Source: Mantamonas sphyraenae STR306 (lineage: Eukaryota > Protista > CRuMs). From it: DNA of 64,000 nt. This document shows, piece by piece, positions 17,243-23,127 of the stretch (positions within the stretch are counted from its first letter, which is position 1; each line of letters opens with the position of its first letter). The notes beneath the pieces were generated by a model, which saw only the letters and a program-made list of their open reading frames with translations, was not told where the DNA came from and ran no database searches. The DNA lies in assembly GCA_026936335.1 (NCBI GenBank), contig JAPMXV010000070.1, positions 186,001 through 250,000 of the forward strand, in the 5' to 3' direction. The position numbers were made by a program, and so were the translations under genes.

Positions 17243-17413
17243 AGTTTCACATACCGAACTCATATTTTTCAGGCTGTTCGGTTCAAAATTGAAACTTTTG
17301 TGTGAGCTGGCGCAACGCGATTGGGCTCGGGAAAACAAAACCTACGTCCTGTGAGGAGTGGTATACACTCAGTGTTGGTTGGTTGGTTGGTTGACGGTTC
17401 TGGTGCCCCGTCC
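17243..17413 (-). ncRNA. Candidate omega-RNA scaffold downstream of the Fanzor-like ORF
   Basis: Complementary arms: 17393-97/17408-12, 17356-60/17366-70, 17304-07/17325-28 (inner 17311-13/17317-19), and nested 7-bp stems 17243-49/17290-96 and 17253-59/17276-82. The position matches TnpB/Fanzor omega-RNAs. Expression is untested. Confidence 0.4.
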
Positions 17414-20400
17414 TCAGCCTGCACTCGAATTCGCCTCCAGGTTCTGTGCCTCGCCGTCCACATTCTCTGGCAGACCAATCTTGCTTCGAAACGTCCTTCC
17501 GATCTGACTCCGTTGCCAAACCTTGGTCATGCACCATATGGTGTGGCCGCGAAGGGCAGCATACACCTTGTTCGCGATCGCCTGCGCACTCGCGAAATCC
17601 CTGTTCCGGTGCATCTCACATCGCTCGCAGTACTTGACACGCGCAGTGCGGTCACTTCCGTGCTTGCTCTTGTGCACACTGCCACATGTGGGACATCTCA
17701 GCGTCGTATTGCACTCGTTCACACGCACAACAATCATGTTGTGCTTGGCCAGCTCCTCCAGTTTCTTCACTCCACCACGGCCGCCCTTGAATCCGTCACC
17801 GATGCACAGCAGTGTGATGCGTCGCAGTTGCCCCTCCTCCATCAGTGTGATGCCTCGCACTTGCCCCTCCTCCAACTCCAACTGCATCTTCTCTGTCGCC
17901 CGCACCTGTGCCAGCCATTGCTCCCTCATCTTTCGGATCCGTCTTTTCTGTTCGCGTCGATCATGCGTCTTGCTGTCGCCCCTCTGGCTGCATCCCTCAT
18001 TGAACTGAGCGGATGACCCTTGTTCAGACTCCAGGATCTTGCCGCTGCACTGACTCTTCACCACCCGTCCAGCCCTGGCTGCGGTGTGCACGTCCACAAA
18101 CAACCCAGATCGTTTGCTTCGCAGTTCCTGCATCTTCTCACGCACTGCCGCCGAGAGCAGAGCGTTGTCGCGCTTGATCCCTGTCCTGCGCTCCATGGCA
18201 CCCAGTGACGGTGGTGAAAAACGCCAGGCGTCTGCAAAGTGAAGCACATTGTGGTTCTCAACGAGCTCCGTGCGTGGGATGTACAGAGCTGAAGGCGCAT
18301 TCGAAATGCCTGGATCCATGGCAAGGAACTGCAAGCGCGCATTTGCCTTCGAGCTCAATGGGATGAGCCTGGAGAACGAGCTCACAACACCGTGTGGTCG
18401 TCTGCTGTGCTCCATGGACTCTGGGCACAGCTTCAGGGCAATGATCTTGTCCGCCGATTGTGGAAGCCACTTGCGGAGCAGCTTATGCACAGCCTCGGTC
18501 TGTGTTTGAGCCGCTCCGTCGCCGTCGGCCTCCTGCGGGGCCTCTTCCTCCTTCCCACGCTCCCGGTGCTGGTGTGCGGCCACGTACATGGCAACCTGGC
18601 ACAGACGGATAGTCACAGCAGCAACACGTTCGATGAGGCGTCGTTGGTTGCCTTGATCCTCAGTGCGTGCGTCTTTGTCGCGGCACCTTGTCGACGTCCC
18701 TTCCAGGGCACCCTTGCCATGAATCGCAAAGTTGTACCTGGGTTTGCTGTGAGACAGAAACGGTGACGATTGTGCACGCTCAGCAAGTGGCGCATCCTCC
18801 AGGAACCCCACATTGCCCTTCAGGAAGCGCAGCAGCTGGGCGTCATCGACTGGTTTCGTGTCTGACAAAGACGTAGCGGTTGGATTGCGGAGCAGATTCA
18901 GACACGCACGCAAAGTAGGGAACAGCGAGAGCCGTTCATCGGGAAGGATGAGATGTTCCAGGTAGTACAACCGGCGTTGGCCAGGCCCTGCCGGCACCTG
19001 CCAATGGCGAACGTGCAGAGCGTGTACCGCAGAGAAGAGGCGGAGGGACAGATGCCCATCGTTGATGAAGGGTGTCTTTGAAATCCTGGGCGCGTGCATA
19101 GGGTCAAGCACGGCGAAAACGTCGAAGGCCGCGAGAAGGAGCGGGTCTGTGTACGTGCCCATGTCCTCCCCTGGGATGATGTTGTGGTCCTCATTGTGCG
19201 TGACAACACGTGCTGTGCCGTTGGCGCACCTGGATGCACACACTTGCATCGCCTTGATGGCGTCGCGCGAGAACAAGCGGCTGCTCCCGTTCTCCTCCCC
19301 GATCTTGACCATGTGCCACGCAAACGAAGCCCTCAGGGCATGCACATGTTGGCCATTTCCAGCCAGCTTTGCCCCCCTCAGCCAGCTGCCCACGGCACAG
19401 TCGCACGGGCCTCCTGCCACGCAATGGGGACACGGAGGTGGAAAGTACTCGCCTTCTGAGGAGCACGCACCTGGACTCGATGTGACCGCACCGCACAGAA
19501 TGGACCACGCAAGCATTGTGTCCTCCTTGTCTTCCCAGCAAACATCCAGCAACCCGTCACAGAGTGCGGAAAGGGCCCATCGTCCAAACAGCAATTCCCG
19601 TTCGACCGCGAGTTGGTGATGAAGAGACTGTTTGACCGGGTACAGCTTGCGTGTGGACTGGCATTCTCTGGCCAGATTGTACGCGCAATCATGAGAGTCG
19701 GCGCCGGAGTCGCTCGGATCGTTGCACATCAGCGCCTTGTACCTGTCCACAGAAAGCCCCACCACTTCGCGCAGCACAGTCGCGACCGCGTGCTCGCATG
19801 CCTTGCTTGTTGGTGTGTCTTGAGCATCAGTGTCCTCTTTGTCATCCACTCCTTTGTGCAGGCGTTTGACAACTGCCAGGACATCACGGCGCTCGACGTC
19901 GCCGTTGCTTGCCACCACCAGGTCGACCAAGTTGTCAACGGCCTGGTTGATCAGCATGACCTTCCAGTTGGTCAGCACGAGTGCAGCTCCCCGCTGGCAA
20001 AGGGCTGTGAAGGCTCCACTGGGGAGACAACGCAGGTCGATGCCGCACCTCGCTTCCTCGGGTGCCAGCTCATCCAGATACTCCGCAACGACTCCACCGC
20101 TCGGTTGTCTGCTCAACACGAGGTCCGCTGTCACAGAGATGTACTTGGGGAACTTGGGGAGCTTCGGGGTTGCCTCGCATGTGATCTCCACCTCAGACGG
20201 CGGCTTCAGGTAGAATCGGCCTACCTTGAGCTGCAAGCAAGCCGACAGCACGTTCTCGAGTTCTTTGCTTGGTTCCAGCAGACCACACTCGAGCAAATCA
20301 CACTGGATGGCAACGATTAGCCCAAAGGCGTGCGCCATCGCATCCAACTCTTCCACGGATCGTGCGTTGATGAGCGCAGCATTTCGCAGTTTCTCGAGGC

Positions 20401-23044
20401 TGCCGAGCTCCACCACACACGAAGACGATGCCAGACGCTCAGTATGTTCCGTGTCCAGCTTTGGTGTCGAGAAGCCCATGAATACTTCCCACTCGTTGTC
20501 CTCCGGGTCCGGCAGAATTGTGTTGATCACTGCGTCCAGTCGCGAGGCACCGTGGCCATCGTCATCGTCGTCTTGCTTTTGGTACACGTAGTCGATGGCA
20601 TTGCTGGCCATTGTGTCCCAAAAGACCGCCTCGCCAGAGCTGGGTGGCGTTGGACCAAGGATGGCGGCCAGCTGTTGATTGTCGCCCACGAACACGTCCA
20701 TGGAGGCATCAACACCCGCCTTCTTCATCGCCTTGGTCATCTTCGTGTTGAGCTTTTCGCGCACGGTTGCCTCCAGCACGCCACGCATCTTGCTGAGCCG
20801 CTCGCGCTTCCCATTGTCGGCATGCTTCTTGCACAGGGCTTCCCACTTCTTGACCGAGATCATGTTGTTGTACATGGATGCAGGGTTGGTGTACTCAATC
20901 TCGTCTGTGCCCCGGGCCGCTGCCACAAGGCCCTCGACACCCTCTGCCGCCACGTCAACCGCCACCGGGTACACGTGTCGGGATCCGATGTTCTCCAACG
21001 GCACATGTGATGCATCGTGTCGCTTCATCGCCTCCCAACGCGTCCGAATCTGTTCTTTCAGGCCGTCCAGCGCGCCACGCAGGGTCTGTTCGCCTTCCAG
21101 CTGGCGCGCCTGCTCCACCACCTCTCCTGGTGGGAGCAGACGTGCCTTTCGCAATGTGTCATGGTCTGTCACGGCATAATCATTGGCGTACGCCGCAAAC
21201 AGGGATCCAATGTGTCCGCCACCACCCAGGTCGACTTGACCCAGCACCTGAGGACCAGGCAGGCCACTCCAATCCAGCTCAGCTTTCGTTCCACCCGTAT
21301 CGAACACGGCGTCCCATGCGTGCAATGACGTGAGGGTGTTGATCGTGCGGTCGTCGAAGCCCATTTGACACAGGTGGAACTTCACGGAAGCAAGATACTT
21401 CTGGGCGTGCTCCTGCACCAGGTCCAGGTGCTTGGAAGCAGGTTGTGTGCCCCGTGTGCCTTGCAGTAGATGTGCCACGGACTTGTCGTCCCAAAGGATC
21501 GGTTGGTAGATGTACGTCAGCAAGCTCCCGCCGCCCGCCAGCAACTCATTCAGGCTCCCGGCATCCAGCCGCAGCATGTTCCTGCGCGGAGCTCGCACGG
21601 CTGCCTCAATGTCGCTCGACAACAGCAACGCCGCCACGAGTGACACCAACCGGCCGACGTGAGGCTCGACGATTGCGAAGCCAAGGCGAGGGTGCAGGAG
21701 AACAACTGGGTGCTCGGCGACGTTGTATCCCCAATCACTATCATGCAGGGTGATCACAAAGGTGACGTGTTGATCTCGGTTGTACAAACGCACCAGCTCG
21801 TTTTTGACGTCGTCGGCCAGACATGCACCGGCGTTCTCATTCACCTTGTCGTTGCCACACTCGTACACATCGTGCTGGGAACACAGGTGTTTTACAGCAT
21901 GATAGACAGCAACCTGCGCCTGTCCAGTCAAACTCAACGTATGCCCCTGTGCTAGTGTCTTCAAGTCGGCCTTCTCCCGTTTCAACTTGCGCAACGTCTT
22001 GCTCATGGTCGCCACATGCGCCAGCGTGTTCTCCATGCGCCGTAGGTGCGTGCCGAAGCTAACTGACTGGGCCTGCTCATCGAGAAACTCGGGCTTCAGA
22101 TCGCAGACGAGCACGTACTTGACATTCGCATTCCAAAGGTCCACCCGCAGTTCTGTGGCCGCTTTCTCAGCCTCGACACATCGTGTAACCAGTTCACGCA
22201 CCTTCTCTTCGGGTACGTCTGACACGCGGGCCGCCTCCTCCACGACCGTGTGGACCACGGAGCTGACGTCAACCAGCACCTTCACGTCGCCTTCGAGCTG
22301 AGTCATGCCTTGCTCAAATTCGATACCGTAGGTTGCCAAGATATCTTGCTGTCGCCTCGCCTTGCCACTGCCTCCTTGTCGCCCGTGGGCCAATTGGACC
22401 GACACCACTTGGTCCGATTCAGTCGGTTTCCGTTTTTTGCCCTCCTGCGCTTTCCTTGGACGTCTTGCGACCGGGCTGTACTCCTCATCCTCACTATCCT
22501 CCTCATCATCGCTGTACTCCTCATCCTCGCGGTACTCCTCATAGTCGCCGTAAACCAATTCCGTGTCCATAGCCGCCTGAGCGGCTGCAAACATCCAGAC
22601 GCTTCCTACACCTCCCTCCACCTTCGAACTTCGGCGTGGCCCTTGCACGTCCACCACAGTCTCCCGGGCGCTAACACCAAGCACACACACATCACAGAAT
22701 CGTTCTTGCAGTCCCACGCCATTGTCACAATGAACAGAAGCACAGACGTGGCGGCGCGAACGCTTCATTCCGGACCGCTCGGAAACCGAAAGGCCGTCCT
22801 CACCGTCGTTGTCAAGGGCGATGTTGCTGTGGCTACGTTTCCGTTTGTCATTATGCTTTGCATGCTTTGCGTGGTGTTCGCTCATTGTGCGCGTTTTCTT
22901 GCCCCCTGTGGCGCAGCTTGTTTGGCGTTCGGTCCTCATCTGCAGGCCATACGGGCCAAATACAACGAGCACAGCCCCATGACACACAAATGCAGGCGCC
23001 ATGCCAAAGGTGGAATGAACAAACTTCAGAAAGGGGATTTTCAT
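17414..23044 (-). CDS. Giant Fanzor/TnpB-like RuvC endonuclease with N-terminal FEN1/XPG-like 5' nuclease (PIN-fold) domain; start may be ATG 23044, 22885 or 22570
   Basis: Numbering follows the 1886-aa track ORF. RuvC-I FLAMDPG D1587 (18314-16); LLCIGDG (G-D codons 17795-17800); VRVNECNTT E1787 (17714-16); CPTC...CERC zinc ribbon; NRDFASA D1826 (17597-99). N-terminal motifs: VLVD269, LVCD325, LAD421D422, HD445SD447, LLSSD488. Confidence 0.85.
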   Translation of the reverse strand: MKIPFLKFVHSTFGMAPAFVCHGAVLVVFGPYGLQMRTERQTSCATGGKKTRTMSEHHAKHAKHNDKRKRSHSNIALDNDGEDGLSVSERSGMKRSRRHVCASVHCDNGVGLQERFCDVCVLGVSARETVVDVQGPRRSSKVEGGVGSVWMFAAAQAAMDTELVYGDYEEYREDEEYSDDEEDSEDEEYSPVARRPRKAQEGKKRKPTESDQVVSVQLAHGRQGGSGKARRQQDILATYGIEFEQGMTQLEGDVKVLVDVSSVVHTVVEEAARVSDVPEEKVRELVTRCVEAEKAATELRVDLWNANVKYVLVCDLKPEFLDEQAQSVSFGTHLRRMENTLAHVATMSKTLRKLKREKADLKTLAQGHTLSLTGQAQVAVYHAVKHLCSQHDVYECGNDKVNENAGACLADDVKNELVRLYNRDQHVTFVITLHDSDWGYNVAEHPVVLLHPRLGFAIVEPHVGRLVSLVAALLLSSDIEAAVRAPRRNMLRLDAGSLNELLAGGGSLLTYIYQPILWDDKSVAHLLQGTRGTQPASKHLDLVQEHAQKYLASVKFHLCQMGFDDRTINTLTSLHAWDAVFDTGGTKAELDWSGLPGPQVLGQVDLGGGGHIGSLFAAYANDYAVTDHDTLRKARLLPPGEVVEQARQLEGEQTLRGALDGLKEQIRTRWEAMKRHDASHVPLENIGSRHVYPVAVDVAAEGVEGLVAAARGTDEIEYTNPASMYNNMISVKKWEALCKKHADNGKRERLSKMRGVLEATVREKLNTKMTKAMKKAGVDASMDVFVGDNQQLAAILGPTPPSSGEAVFWDTMASNAIDYVYQKQDDDDDGHGASRLDAVINTILPDPEDNEWEVFMGFSTPKLDTEHTERLASSSCVVELGSLEKLRNAALINARSVEELDAMAHAFGLIVAIQCDLLECGLLEPSKELENVLSACLQLKVGRFYLKPPSEVEITCEATPKLPKFPKYISVTADLVLSRQPSGGVVAEYLDELAPEEARCGIDLRCLPSGAFTALCQRGAALVLTNWKVMLINQAVDNLVDLVVASNGDVERRDVLAVVKRLHKGVDDKEDTDAQDTPTSKACEHAVATVLREVVGLSVDRYKALMCNDPSDSGADSHDCAYNLARECQSTRKLYPVKQSLHHQLAVERELLFGRWALSALCDGLLDVCWEDKEDTMLAWSILCGAVTSSPGACSSEGEYFPPPCPHCVAGGPCDCAVGSWLRGAKLAGNGQHVHALRASFAWHMVKIGEENGSSRLFSRDAIKAMQVCASRCANGTARVVTHNEDHNIIPGEDMGTYTDPLLLAAFDVFAVLDPMHAPRISKTPFINDGHLSLRLFSAVHALHVRHWQVPAGPGQRRLYYLEHLILPDERLSLFPTLRACLNLLRNPTATSLSDTKPVDDAQLLRFLKGNVGFLEDAPLAERAQSSPFLSHSKPRYNFAIHGKGALEGTSTRCRDKDARTEDQGNQRRLIERVAAVTIRLCQVAMYVAAHQHRERGKEEEAPQEADGDGAAQTQTEAVHKLLRKWLPQSADKIIALKLCPESMEHSRRPHGVVSSFSRLIPLSSKANARLQFLAMDPGISNAPSALYIPRTELVENHNVLHFADAWRFSPPSLGAMERRTGIKRDNALLSAAVREKMQELRSKRSGLFVDVHTAARAGRVVKSQCSGKILESEQGSSAQFNEGCSQRGDSKTHDRREQKRRIRKMREQWLAQVRATEKMQLELEEGQVRGITLMEEGQLRRITLLCIGDGFKGGRGGVKKLEELAKHNMIVVRVNECNTTLRCPTCGSVHKSKHGSDRTARVKYCERCEMHRNRDFASAQAIANKVYAALRGHTIWCMTKVWQRSQIGRTFRSKIGLPENVDGEAQNLEANSSAG
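17810..17875. repeat. 33-bp in-frame tandem duplication (30/33 identical) inside the RuvC region
   Basis: cagtgtgatgcgtcgcagttgcccctcctccat / cagtgtgatgcctcgcacttgcccctcctccaa, encoding LEEGQVRGITL-MEEGQLRRITL. Confidence 0.95.
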
Positions 23045-23127
23045 TGGCAACGGGGTTTGCGGTGCGAGGCTCAACTTGACCCGAATTCACTGTAATTTTC
23101 GCAAGAAGATCGATCAGCGGGAAAGAT

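Follow-up and report, generated by a model that had tools for sequence, protein, structure and literature searches.

The minus strand of the analysed window (64,000 nucleotides of Mantamonas sphyraenae STR306, contig JAPMXV010000070.1, positions 186,001 to 250,000) carries one copy of a multi-copy transposon, whose single, unusually large protein joins a Fanzor/TnpB-type (probably RNA-guided) DNA cutter to a domain with the predicted fold of FEN-superfamily 5' nucleases, an arrangement that we found described nowhere. The element (17270..23092, minus strand, 5,823 bp from TIR to TIR) is a transposase-less DNA transposon of the Tc1/mariner type filled by one ORF. This analysis confirmed the observation made in an earlier note, which had proposed a giant Fanzor/TnpB-like nuclease fused to a FEN1/XPG-like 5' nuclease, and supported both halves of that domain assignment. 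On the other hand, the note did not recognize that the ORF is the cargo of a mobile element rather than part of a single host system, that Pfam XPG models do not match the N-terminal domain, and that, in our alignment, the glutamates of the FEN E-x-E motif are not conserved.

The ORF (17414..23074, minus strand) comprises 1,886 codons without a stop, plus the stop codon, and the chance of such a frame in random sequence of this composition is about 1e-28. All of the motifs cited in the note are present at the residue numbers given there (counted from the TTG at 23074 and used for the single residues named below), namely FLAMDPG (D1587), CIGDG, VNECNTT-LR-CPTCG (E1787), CERC, RDFASA (D1826) and HDSDWG (D445/D447). 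However, the likely start codon is the ATG at 22885-22883 (MSEHH), which is conserved across the family and gives a protein of about 1,823 aa. The 25-Mb genome holds at least 13 copies of this family (family A), 36-98% identical in protein, all of them with open frames of at least 1,728 aa. The comparison of the window copy with five diverged copies yielded dN/dS of 0.22-0.31, uniform along the length of the ORF, which is indicative of purifying selection. At least two other giant families (including family B, see below) and four ordinary-sized Fanzor-like ORFs are also present in the genome.

The boundaries of the element were established by comparison with four copies that are 98% identical, as the similarity stops sharply at both ends and the flanks are unrelated. 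The imperfect terminal inverted repeats begin CAG. The 5' repeat occupies 23071..23092 (minus strand, starting CAGTGAATTCGG...) and the 3' repeat 17270..17291 (minus strand, ...GAACCGAACAGCCTG), and the match of the former to the reverse complement of the 3' end is 13/24 in the window copy and up to 20/24 in the copy designated L028. All 13 copies end ...CGAACAG(C)CTG. A search with the TIR pattern revealed 18 occurrences in the genome (17 of them at the ends of known giant-element copies) as compared to 0 for the reversed control. The dinucleotide TA lies just outside the 5' end (23093-23094), whereas at the 3' side the window copy has AA (17268-17269) where 12 other copies have TA; of the 12 copies whose two ends were read, 11 have TA on both sides. 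A longer duplication (AAAAT) at the window copy was rejected, as it is not seen at any other copy. DNA contigs of four samples compared with 5,995 bases showed only collapsed repeat pieces and flanks of other copies and no empty site, so that the interpretation of TA as a target-site duplication rests on analogy. Fanzor1-only elements with mariner TIRs and TA duplications are known (PMC3627910). No transposase is present in the window copy, making it non-autonomous, but two related copies (L030 and L031) still carry decayed remains of a Tc1/mariner DDE transposase between the 5' TIR and the giant ORF. Intact DDE_3 transposases exist in the genome, although none with matching TIRs was found.

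The C-terminal part of the protein (17519..18328, minus strand) is assigned to a split RuvC-like domain with a CxxC...CxxC zinc ribbon, the catalytic candidates being D1587 (18314-18316), E1787 (17714-17716) and D1826 (17597-17599). The Pfam model of the TnpB/Cas12f zinc ribbon (PF07282) matches with 29.6 bits against a curated cut-off of 26.3 (35 bits in a six-frame search of the genome), the NCBIfam model guided_TnpB matches at E 2e-5 but below its cut-off, and the weak PDB profile hits in this stretch are mostly Cas12f, TnpB or Fanzor-like chains, including LaTranC and mimivirus L79. The motif D-X(125,275)-[TS][TS]-X-X-C4 zinc finger-X(5,50)-RD of Bao & Jurka 2013 (PMC3627910) is satisfied, with 203 residues from D1587 to T1790/T1791 followed by LR, CPTC...CERC, five residues and RD. 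The relocated glutamate just before the zinc ribbon is as described by Jiang et al. 2023 (PMC10530073). E1787, together with the two Asp and four Cys residues, is invariant in families A and B and aligns with the Glu of the small Fanzors of the same genome, while the CIGDG glycines, placed at the canonical RuvC-II position by motif only, are also invariant. An AF2 model of the C-terminal 751 aa was too poor to search (pLDDT 43), and, although its order of strands and helices fits RuvC, the RuvC fold, the convergence of D/E/D and the WED/REC parts are not shown. An in-frame 33-bp tandem duplication (17810..17874, minus strand; 11 aa, 2.0 copies, 93% match) just upstream of the CIGDG strand is extra sequence in the window copy relative to the copy L025.

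The N-terminal region (22322..22885, minus strand) is of low complexity, with basic NLS-like clusters (KRKR, KKRKP) and an acidic 6-aa repeat (18 bp x 4.2 at 22478-22552); notably, N-terminal NLSs are reported for Fanzors (PMC10530073). It is followed by the predicted FEN-superfamily (5' nuclease, PIN-like) domain (21287..22321, minus strand), for which an AF2 model of pLDDT 67 and pTM 0.66 was obtained. The structural alignment of this model (VIA-align) against 48,161 chains placed FEN/XRN-type nucleases at 12 of the 14 best positions (Z 7.0-10.0, covering residues 1/11 to about 320-375), with T4 RNase H first (Z 10.0), then Xrn1 (Z 9.1) and plastid exonuclease 1 (Z 8.5), followed by Pol1, ExoIX, Exo1 and T5 exonuclease. 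Foldseek put Exo1 first, a shape search of the Atlas put Pol I with 5_3_exonuc first, and language-model features pointed to the Pox_G5 and XPG families. Six aspartates are invariant, D269 (22268-22270), D325 (22100-22102), D421 (21812-21814), D445 (21740-21742), D447 (21734-21736) and D488 (21611-21613), at positions that appear to fit the FEN topology: after strand 1, after strand 2, in an A-D motif, in a D-x-D motif and in the following helical part. A poorly ordered helical segment is found where the helical arch lies. At the same time, sequence identity to the structural matches is only 9-13%, and no Pfam XPG or 5_3_exonuc match was obtained (XPG_N and XPG_I gave no hit at E <= 1 in the protein scan, and the giant ORFs are absent from their genome-wide hits at E <= 10). 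In our alignment to the FEN motifs, which was not based on superposition, the two glutamates of the E-x-E motif are not conserved, so that 5' nuclease activity is uncertain.

The central region of about 985 aa (18329..21286, minus strand) has no assignable domain, and its modelled part is mostly helical. It presumably contains the WED/REC-equivalent parts of the Fanzor module plus unknown additions. An exhaustive profile search covering 19667-22369 (residues 240-1140) found 0 hits among 1.84 billion representative proteins and 0 in PDB sequences, and an Atlas feature search did not recognize 19517-21166. Word-based searches with the full-length protein, with the C-terminal alignment and with the C-terminal 328 aa, as well as scans of metagenome and viral contigs, likewise failed to identify relatives. 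The central region is nonetheless conserved (dN/dS about 0.25), and these about 950 conserved residues without detectable relatives are an unexplored protein module in their own right. Within the same genome, a profile-profile comparison (hhalign) of family A with family B detected homology only in the RuvC part, and with the small Fanzors only the ~60-residue E...C4...RD block could be aligned.

The 3' end of the element (17270..17841, minus strand), comprising the last ~140 codons, the 144-nt 3' UTR and the TIR, is conserved at the nucleotide level and is a candidate guide-RNA (omega/fRNA) scaffold and/or a cis-acting transposon end. This block of ~570 nt is 87-91% identical to subfamilies whose remaining ORF cannot be aligned by megablast, and synonymous differences fall to 0.17-0.42, against 0.41-0.84 elsewhere, in four of five comparisons. 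The same pattern appears in family B, whose ends are unrelated, and in Fanzor1 the TIR and TSD form part of the guide-RNA scaffold (PMC10711439). However, covariation is modest (10 of 74 predicted pairs show compensatory changes), the folding energy is no better than that of shuffled sequences (z = 0.22), no Rfam family matches beyond one chance-level miRNA hit outside the element, and recombination between subfamilies could also explain the conservation. The 3' UTR also contains an (AACC)n microsatellite (17374..17393, minus strand) that differs in copy number between copies.

The closest known system is Fanzor1 carried by Tc1/mariner-type elements, for example PUl-4 of Bao & Jurka 2013 and SpuFz1, with which the window element shares the C-terminal motif and relocated glutamate, N-terminal NLS-like clusters, a single ORF with mariner-like TIRs and TA flanks, multiple copies and a conserved 3' non-coding end. 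It differs in size (about 1,820 aa against a mean of 620 aa, PMC10530073, and a stated upper range of about 800 aa for Fanzor1, PMC10711439), in the predicted FEN-fold domain and in the about 950 residues without relatives. As compared to FEN-superfamily 5' nucleases (T4 RNase H, T5 FEN, Pol I 5' nuclease, Exo1/FEN1/XPG, Xrn1), it shares the predicted fold over about 320 residues and, as far as our alignment shows, the placement of the invariant aspartates, but is fused to a TnpB-like nuclease inside a transposon.

Taken with moderate confidence, and without RNA data to show either a guide RNA or a single full-length mRNA, we infer that, as with TnpB and Fanzor, the protein probably binds an RNA made from the conserved 3' end of its own element. 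This RNA would read on into the flanking DNA and guide the RuvC centre to cut copies of the insertion site that lack the element, whereupon the fused 5' nuclease would resect or trim the 5' strands at the break. Repair would go through homologous recombination using a copy that still carries the element, which keeps or spreads it, while DDE transposases supplied in trans would move it by cut-and-paste.

A less likely alternative is that the N-terminal domain works on RNA, as an XRN-like 5'-to-3' exoribonuclease or processing nuclease that trims the element's long transcript to the protein-protected guide RNA at its 3' end or degrades target transcripts. Indeed, Xrn1, Xrn2 and Rat1 are among the best structural matches (Z 7.9-9.1), and a guide RNA would have to be released from the 3' end of a transcript of about 5.8 kb. 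On the other hand, the best single match is T4 RNase H and most matches are DNA flap or 5' exonucleases, while TnpB-type proteins appear to process their own mRNA into omega RNA with RuvC, needing no extra domain. It is equally unlikely, but possible, that the FEN-like domain is catalytically dead and only binds nucleic acid or serves as a scaffold, the protein then being an oversized but otherwise ordinary Fanzor or a nuclease that is not RNA-guided. The lack of XPG matches, the variation at the positions aligned with the FEN glutamates (Q/K/E and Q/H) and at the second Asp of the ADD motif, and the absence of a detectable FEN-like domain from family B, which has the same size, are in favor of this possibility. 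In contrast, the six Asp, together with K, N and R residues, are invariant across copies down to 35% identity in this domain, where dN/dS is as low as elsewhere. That the long ORF yields a separate 5' nuclease and a separate Fanzor by internal initiation, splicing or proteolysis is very unlikely, although no transcript data bear on it, because the frame stays open across both domains in all 13 family A copies despite saturated synonymous divergence and the linker regions are also under purifying selection. A domesticated host gene, suggested by the absence of a transposase from the window copy and its location between host genes, is contradicted by 13 copies at unrelated loci with TIRs and TA flanks, five of them 98% identical.

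A more far-reaching possibility, which we consider doubtful albeit not excluded, is a natural "cut-and-resect" homing machine, in which a Fanzor-type RNA-guided nuclease has acquired its own 5'-to-3' exonuclease/flap nuclease, plus a large unknown module, so that the breaks it makes in a eukaryotic nucleus are forced into homologous recombination. That would let even transposase-less copies persist and spread. At least three giant lineages (about 1,500-1,900 aa) have expanded in one small genome.

Fanzors are the eukaryotic branch of the TnpB/Cas12 lineage and are of interest both for transposon biology and as compact genome editors. Here the same nuclease core sits in a protein three times the usual size, which is fused to a second, predicted nuclease fold, is kept intact in more than twenty copies and evolves under purifying selection. 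If both centres are active, this would be the first natural coupling of guided cutting with end processing, which would give a direct handle on how such elements bias repair towards homing in eukaryotes and a template for editors that favor recombination.

Inspection of the minus strand revealed a stop-free frame from 23074 to 17414 that is 1,886 codons long, for which the chance in random sequence of the same composition (57-61% G+C) is about 1e-28. The motifs on which the earlier note based its proposal of a giant Fanzor/TnpB-like RuvC nuclease fused to a FEN1/XPG-like 5' nuclease, including those carrying D1587, E1787 and D1826, are all present in this frame, with residues numbered (here and below) from the TTG at 23074. 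The start codon conserved across the family is, however, the ATG at 22885-22883 (MSEHH), which gives a protein of about 1,823 aa.

A search of the window's own genome (25 Mb, 78 contigs, designated below by C numbers) with the last 328 residues identified 13 full-length relatives in open frames of 1,728-1,977 aa (family A). A search with the Pfam model PF07282 revealed three further groups: a family of at least eight ORFs of about 1,850 aa (family B), several ORFs of 1,483-1,638 aa (family C) and four ordinary-sized Fanzor-like ORFs. The latter (loci L011, L012, L013 and L014; 552-616 aa within the loci, open frames of 633-849 aa) show strong PF07282 matches (41-48 bits), and a transposase-like frame lies next to L011. 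Comparison of the window copy with four copies that are 98% identical showed that similarity stops sharply at 23094 and 17270 and that the flanks are unrelated. Every family-A copy ends ...CGAACAG(C)CTG, followed by TA in 12 of 13 copies, while the window copy alone has AA (17268-17269), probably due to a point change in the duplication. In the copies where the 5' end was located, it reads TA then CAG(T/A)..., and the two ends are imperfect inverted repeats matching at 13 of 24 positions in the window copy and at up to 20 of 24 in another family-A copy, L028. The pattern of these terminal inverted repeats (TIRs) occurs 18 times in the genome, against 0 for the reversed control; of these, 17 lie at ends of known giant-element copies, and one is a solitary match to the 3' TIR pattern with no partner (C69:55138-55156), which may represent a truncated further copy. 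CAG-initial TIRs with TA flanks are the hallmark of Tc1/mariner elements.

Notably, two related copies, L030 and L031 (6.8 and 7.1 kb long), carry between the 5' TIR and the giant ORF the decayed remains of a Tc1/mariner-type transposase, including an HTH_32 match, FVDECG and, in L031, VLDNASIH and LPAYCPFLN. In L030 (7632-8213, minus strand) a truncated transposase (HTH plus the first catalytic Asp region) lies directly upstream of the giant ORF, inside the same TIRs, whereas L031 keeps further frameshifted pieces with the second and third catalytic motifs. Intact DDE_3 transposases are common in the genome, and some of them lie next to family-C giants. Family-C ORFs of 1,614-1,638 aa at C57:104822-111694, C2:226819-233671 and C11:271569-278472, which have weak matches to the C-terminal part of the window protein (the C11 copy also to the TNB model), are preceded a few kb upstream on the same strand by open Tc1/mariner transposase-like frames of 373-393 aa, and may be autonomous versions. 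In addition, a 358-aa Tc1/mariner transposase-like frame (C44:17518-18090) lies about 50 bp outside the 5' TIR of the L026 copy on the opposite strand, and may be a nested or adjacent element. The window copy is therefore a transposase-less derivative; Fanzor1-only elements with mariner TIRs and TA duplications were described by Bao & Jurka 2013 (PMC3627910).

The members of family B (L033-L040, on contigs C45, C8, C29, C30, C31, C10, C25 and C58; 1,780-1,861 aa, 44-97% identical) sit in elements of about 6.33 kb with different termini (TTGCAATTGAGCG... to ...GCAAAGGCCTG). Direct duplications of 9-10 bp are visible in L037, L039 and L040, so the transposon superfamily differs. Only the RuvC part of family B can be aligned with family A.

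Family-A proteins are 36-98% identical over their full length, and the frame is open in all copies. Against five diverged copies, dN/dS is 0.22-0.31, and it is low in every 100-codon block, including both nuclease domains and the region between them. This argues, albeit without transcript data, that the whole protein is one selected unit. An in-frame 33-bp tandem duplication (11 aa; 17810-17874) just before the CIGDG strand of RuvC is absent from copy L025, and the (AACC)n microsatellite in the 3' UTR (17374-17393) is much longer in some of the copies L025-L031 (longest in L025).

The assignment of the C-terminus to Fanzor/TnpB is supported by a PF07282 match above the curated cut-off (29.6 against 26.3 bits), whereas the NCBIfam guided_TnpB model matches only weakly, below its cut-off. 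A profile of families A and B yielded weak hits in this stretch to Cas12f, LaTranC, TnpB and the mimivirus TnpB-like protein L79, alongside a few unrelated weak hits elsewhere in the profile. An AF2 model of the last 751 residues is poor (pLDDT 43), and the RuvC fold and the WED/REC parts are therefore not demonstrated. D1587, the CIGDG glycines, E1787, four Cys and D1826 are invariant in both families, and the sequence conforms to the Bao-Jurka motif (PMC3627910). The glutamate just before the zinc ribbon aligns with that of the small Fanzors in the same genome and corresponds to the relocated glutamate that Jiang et al. 2023 showed to be essential (PMC10530073).

In contrast, sequence models fail at the N-terminus, where no Pfam hit was obtained. 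XPG_N and XPG_I find the host's own genes (five loci with canonical XPG_N/XPG_I domains, FEN1/XPG/EXO1-type genes, on contigs C30, C52, C34, C21 and C32) but not the giant ORFs, even at E <= 10; the predicted 5' nuclease domain of the transposon is therefore not a recent copy of a host gene detectable at the Pfam level. An AF2 model of residues 252-636, built with 12 family members, reached pLDDT 67 and pTM 0.66, with a low-confidence helical stretch where FEN enzymes have their helical arch. Four searches point to a FEN-superfamily fold. An all-against-all structural search of 48,161 chains ranked T4 RNase H first (Z 10.0, 208 residues aligned), followed by Xrn1 (Z 9.1), plastid exonuclease 1 (Z 8.5) and Rat1, then by Pol1, ExoIX, a mycobacterial flap endonuclease, Exo1 and T5 exonuclease, with GEN1, XPG and FEN1 ranking lower. 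Foldseek put Exo1 first, though only weakly (E 0.02), the ESM Atlas shape search put first DNA polymerase I with its 5_3_exonuc domain, and language-model features pointed to poxvirus G5, herpesvirus vhs and other XPG-type families. Six aspartates (D269, D325, D421, D445, D447 and D488) are invariant and, by our own alignment to FEN motifs, appear to sit where FEN enzymes have metal ligands. The glutamates of the E-x-E motif are not conserved, so activity is plausible but not assured. As for the middle of the protein, a profile search covering residues about 236-1136 found no relative among 1.84 billion representative proteins and none in PDB sequences, and the stretch from residue 637 to about 1186 was not recognised by the Atlas.

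The last ~570 nt of the element, comprising about 140 codons, a 144-nt UTR and the TIR, are 87-91% identical between subfamilies whose remaining ORF megablast cannot align. Synonymous differences in this region drop to 0.17-0.42, against 0.41-0.84 elsewhere, in four of five comparisons. Family B shows the same pattern, its ends (about 100 nt at 5' and 700 nt at 3') being 85-91% identical between subfamilies whose proteins are only 44-46% identical. A consensus fold pairs the 3' TIR with a stretch near the stop codon and shows compensatory changes in 10 of 74 pairs. On the other hand, the folding energy equals that of shuffles, no Rfam family matches, and recombination could also produce the observed pattern. 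In Fanzor1, the TIR and TSD are reported to form part of the guide-RNA scaffold, with the RNA running about 15 nt beyond the TSD (PMC10711439). The position two bases before the 5' TA is A in 8 of 12 copies (p about 7e-4), which is a possible target or TAM preference.

Overall, this analysis confirmed the giant ORF described in the earlier note and supported the interpretation of its two domains, while its function is inferred. Published Fanzors average 620 aa (PMC10530073), and Fanzor1 is said to reach about 800 aa (PMC10711439). We found no paper that links Fanzor to a flap or 5' exonuclease domain. The element is of an established type, a Fanzor1 in a Tc1/mariner-type transposon, and what is new is its architecture.
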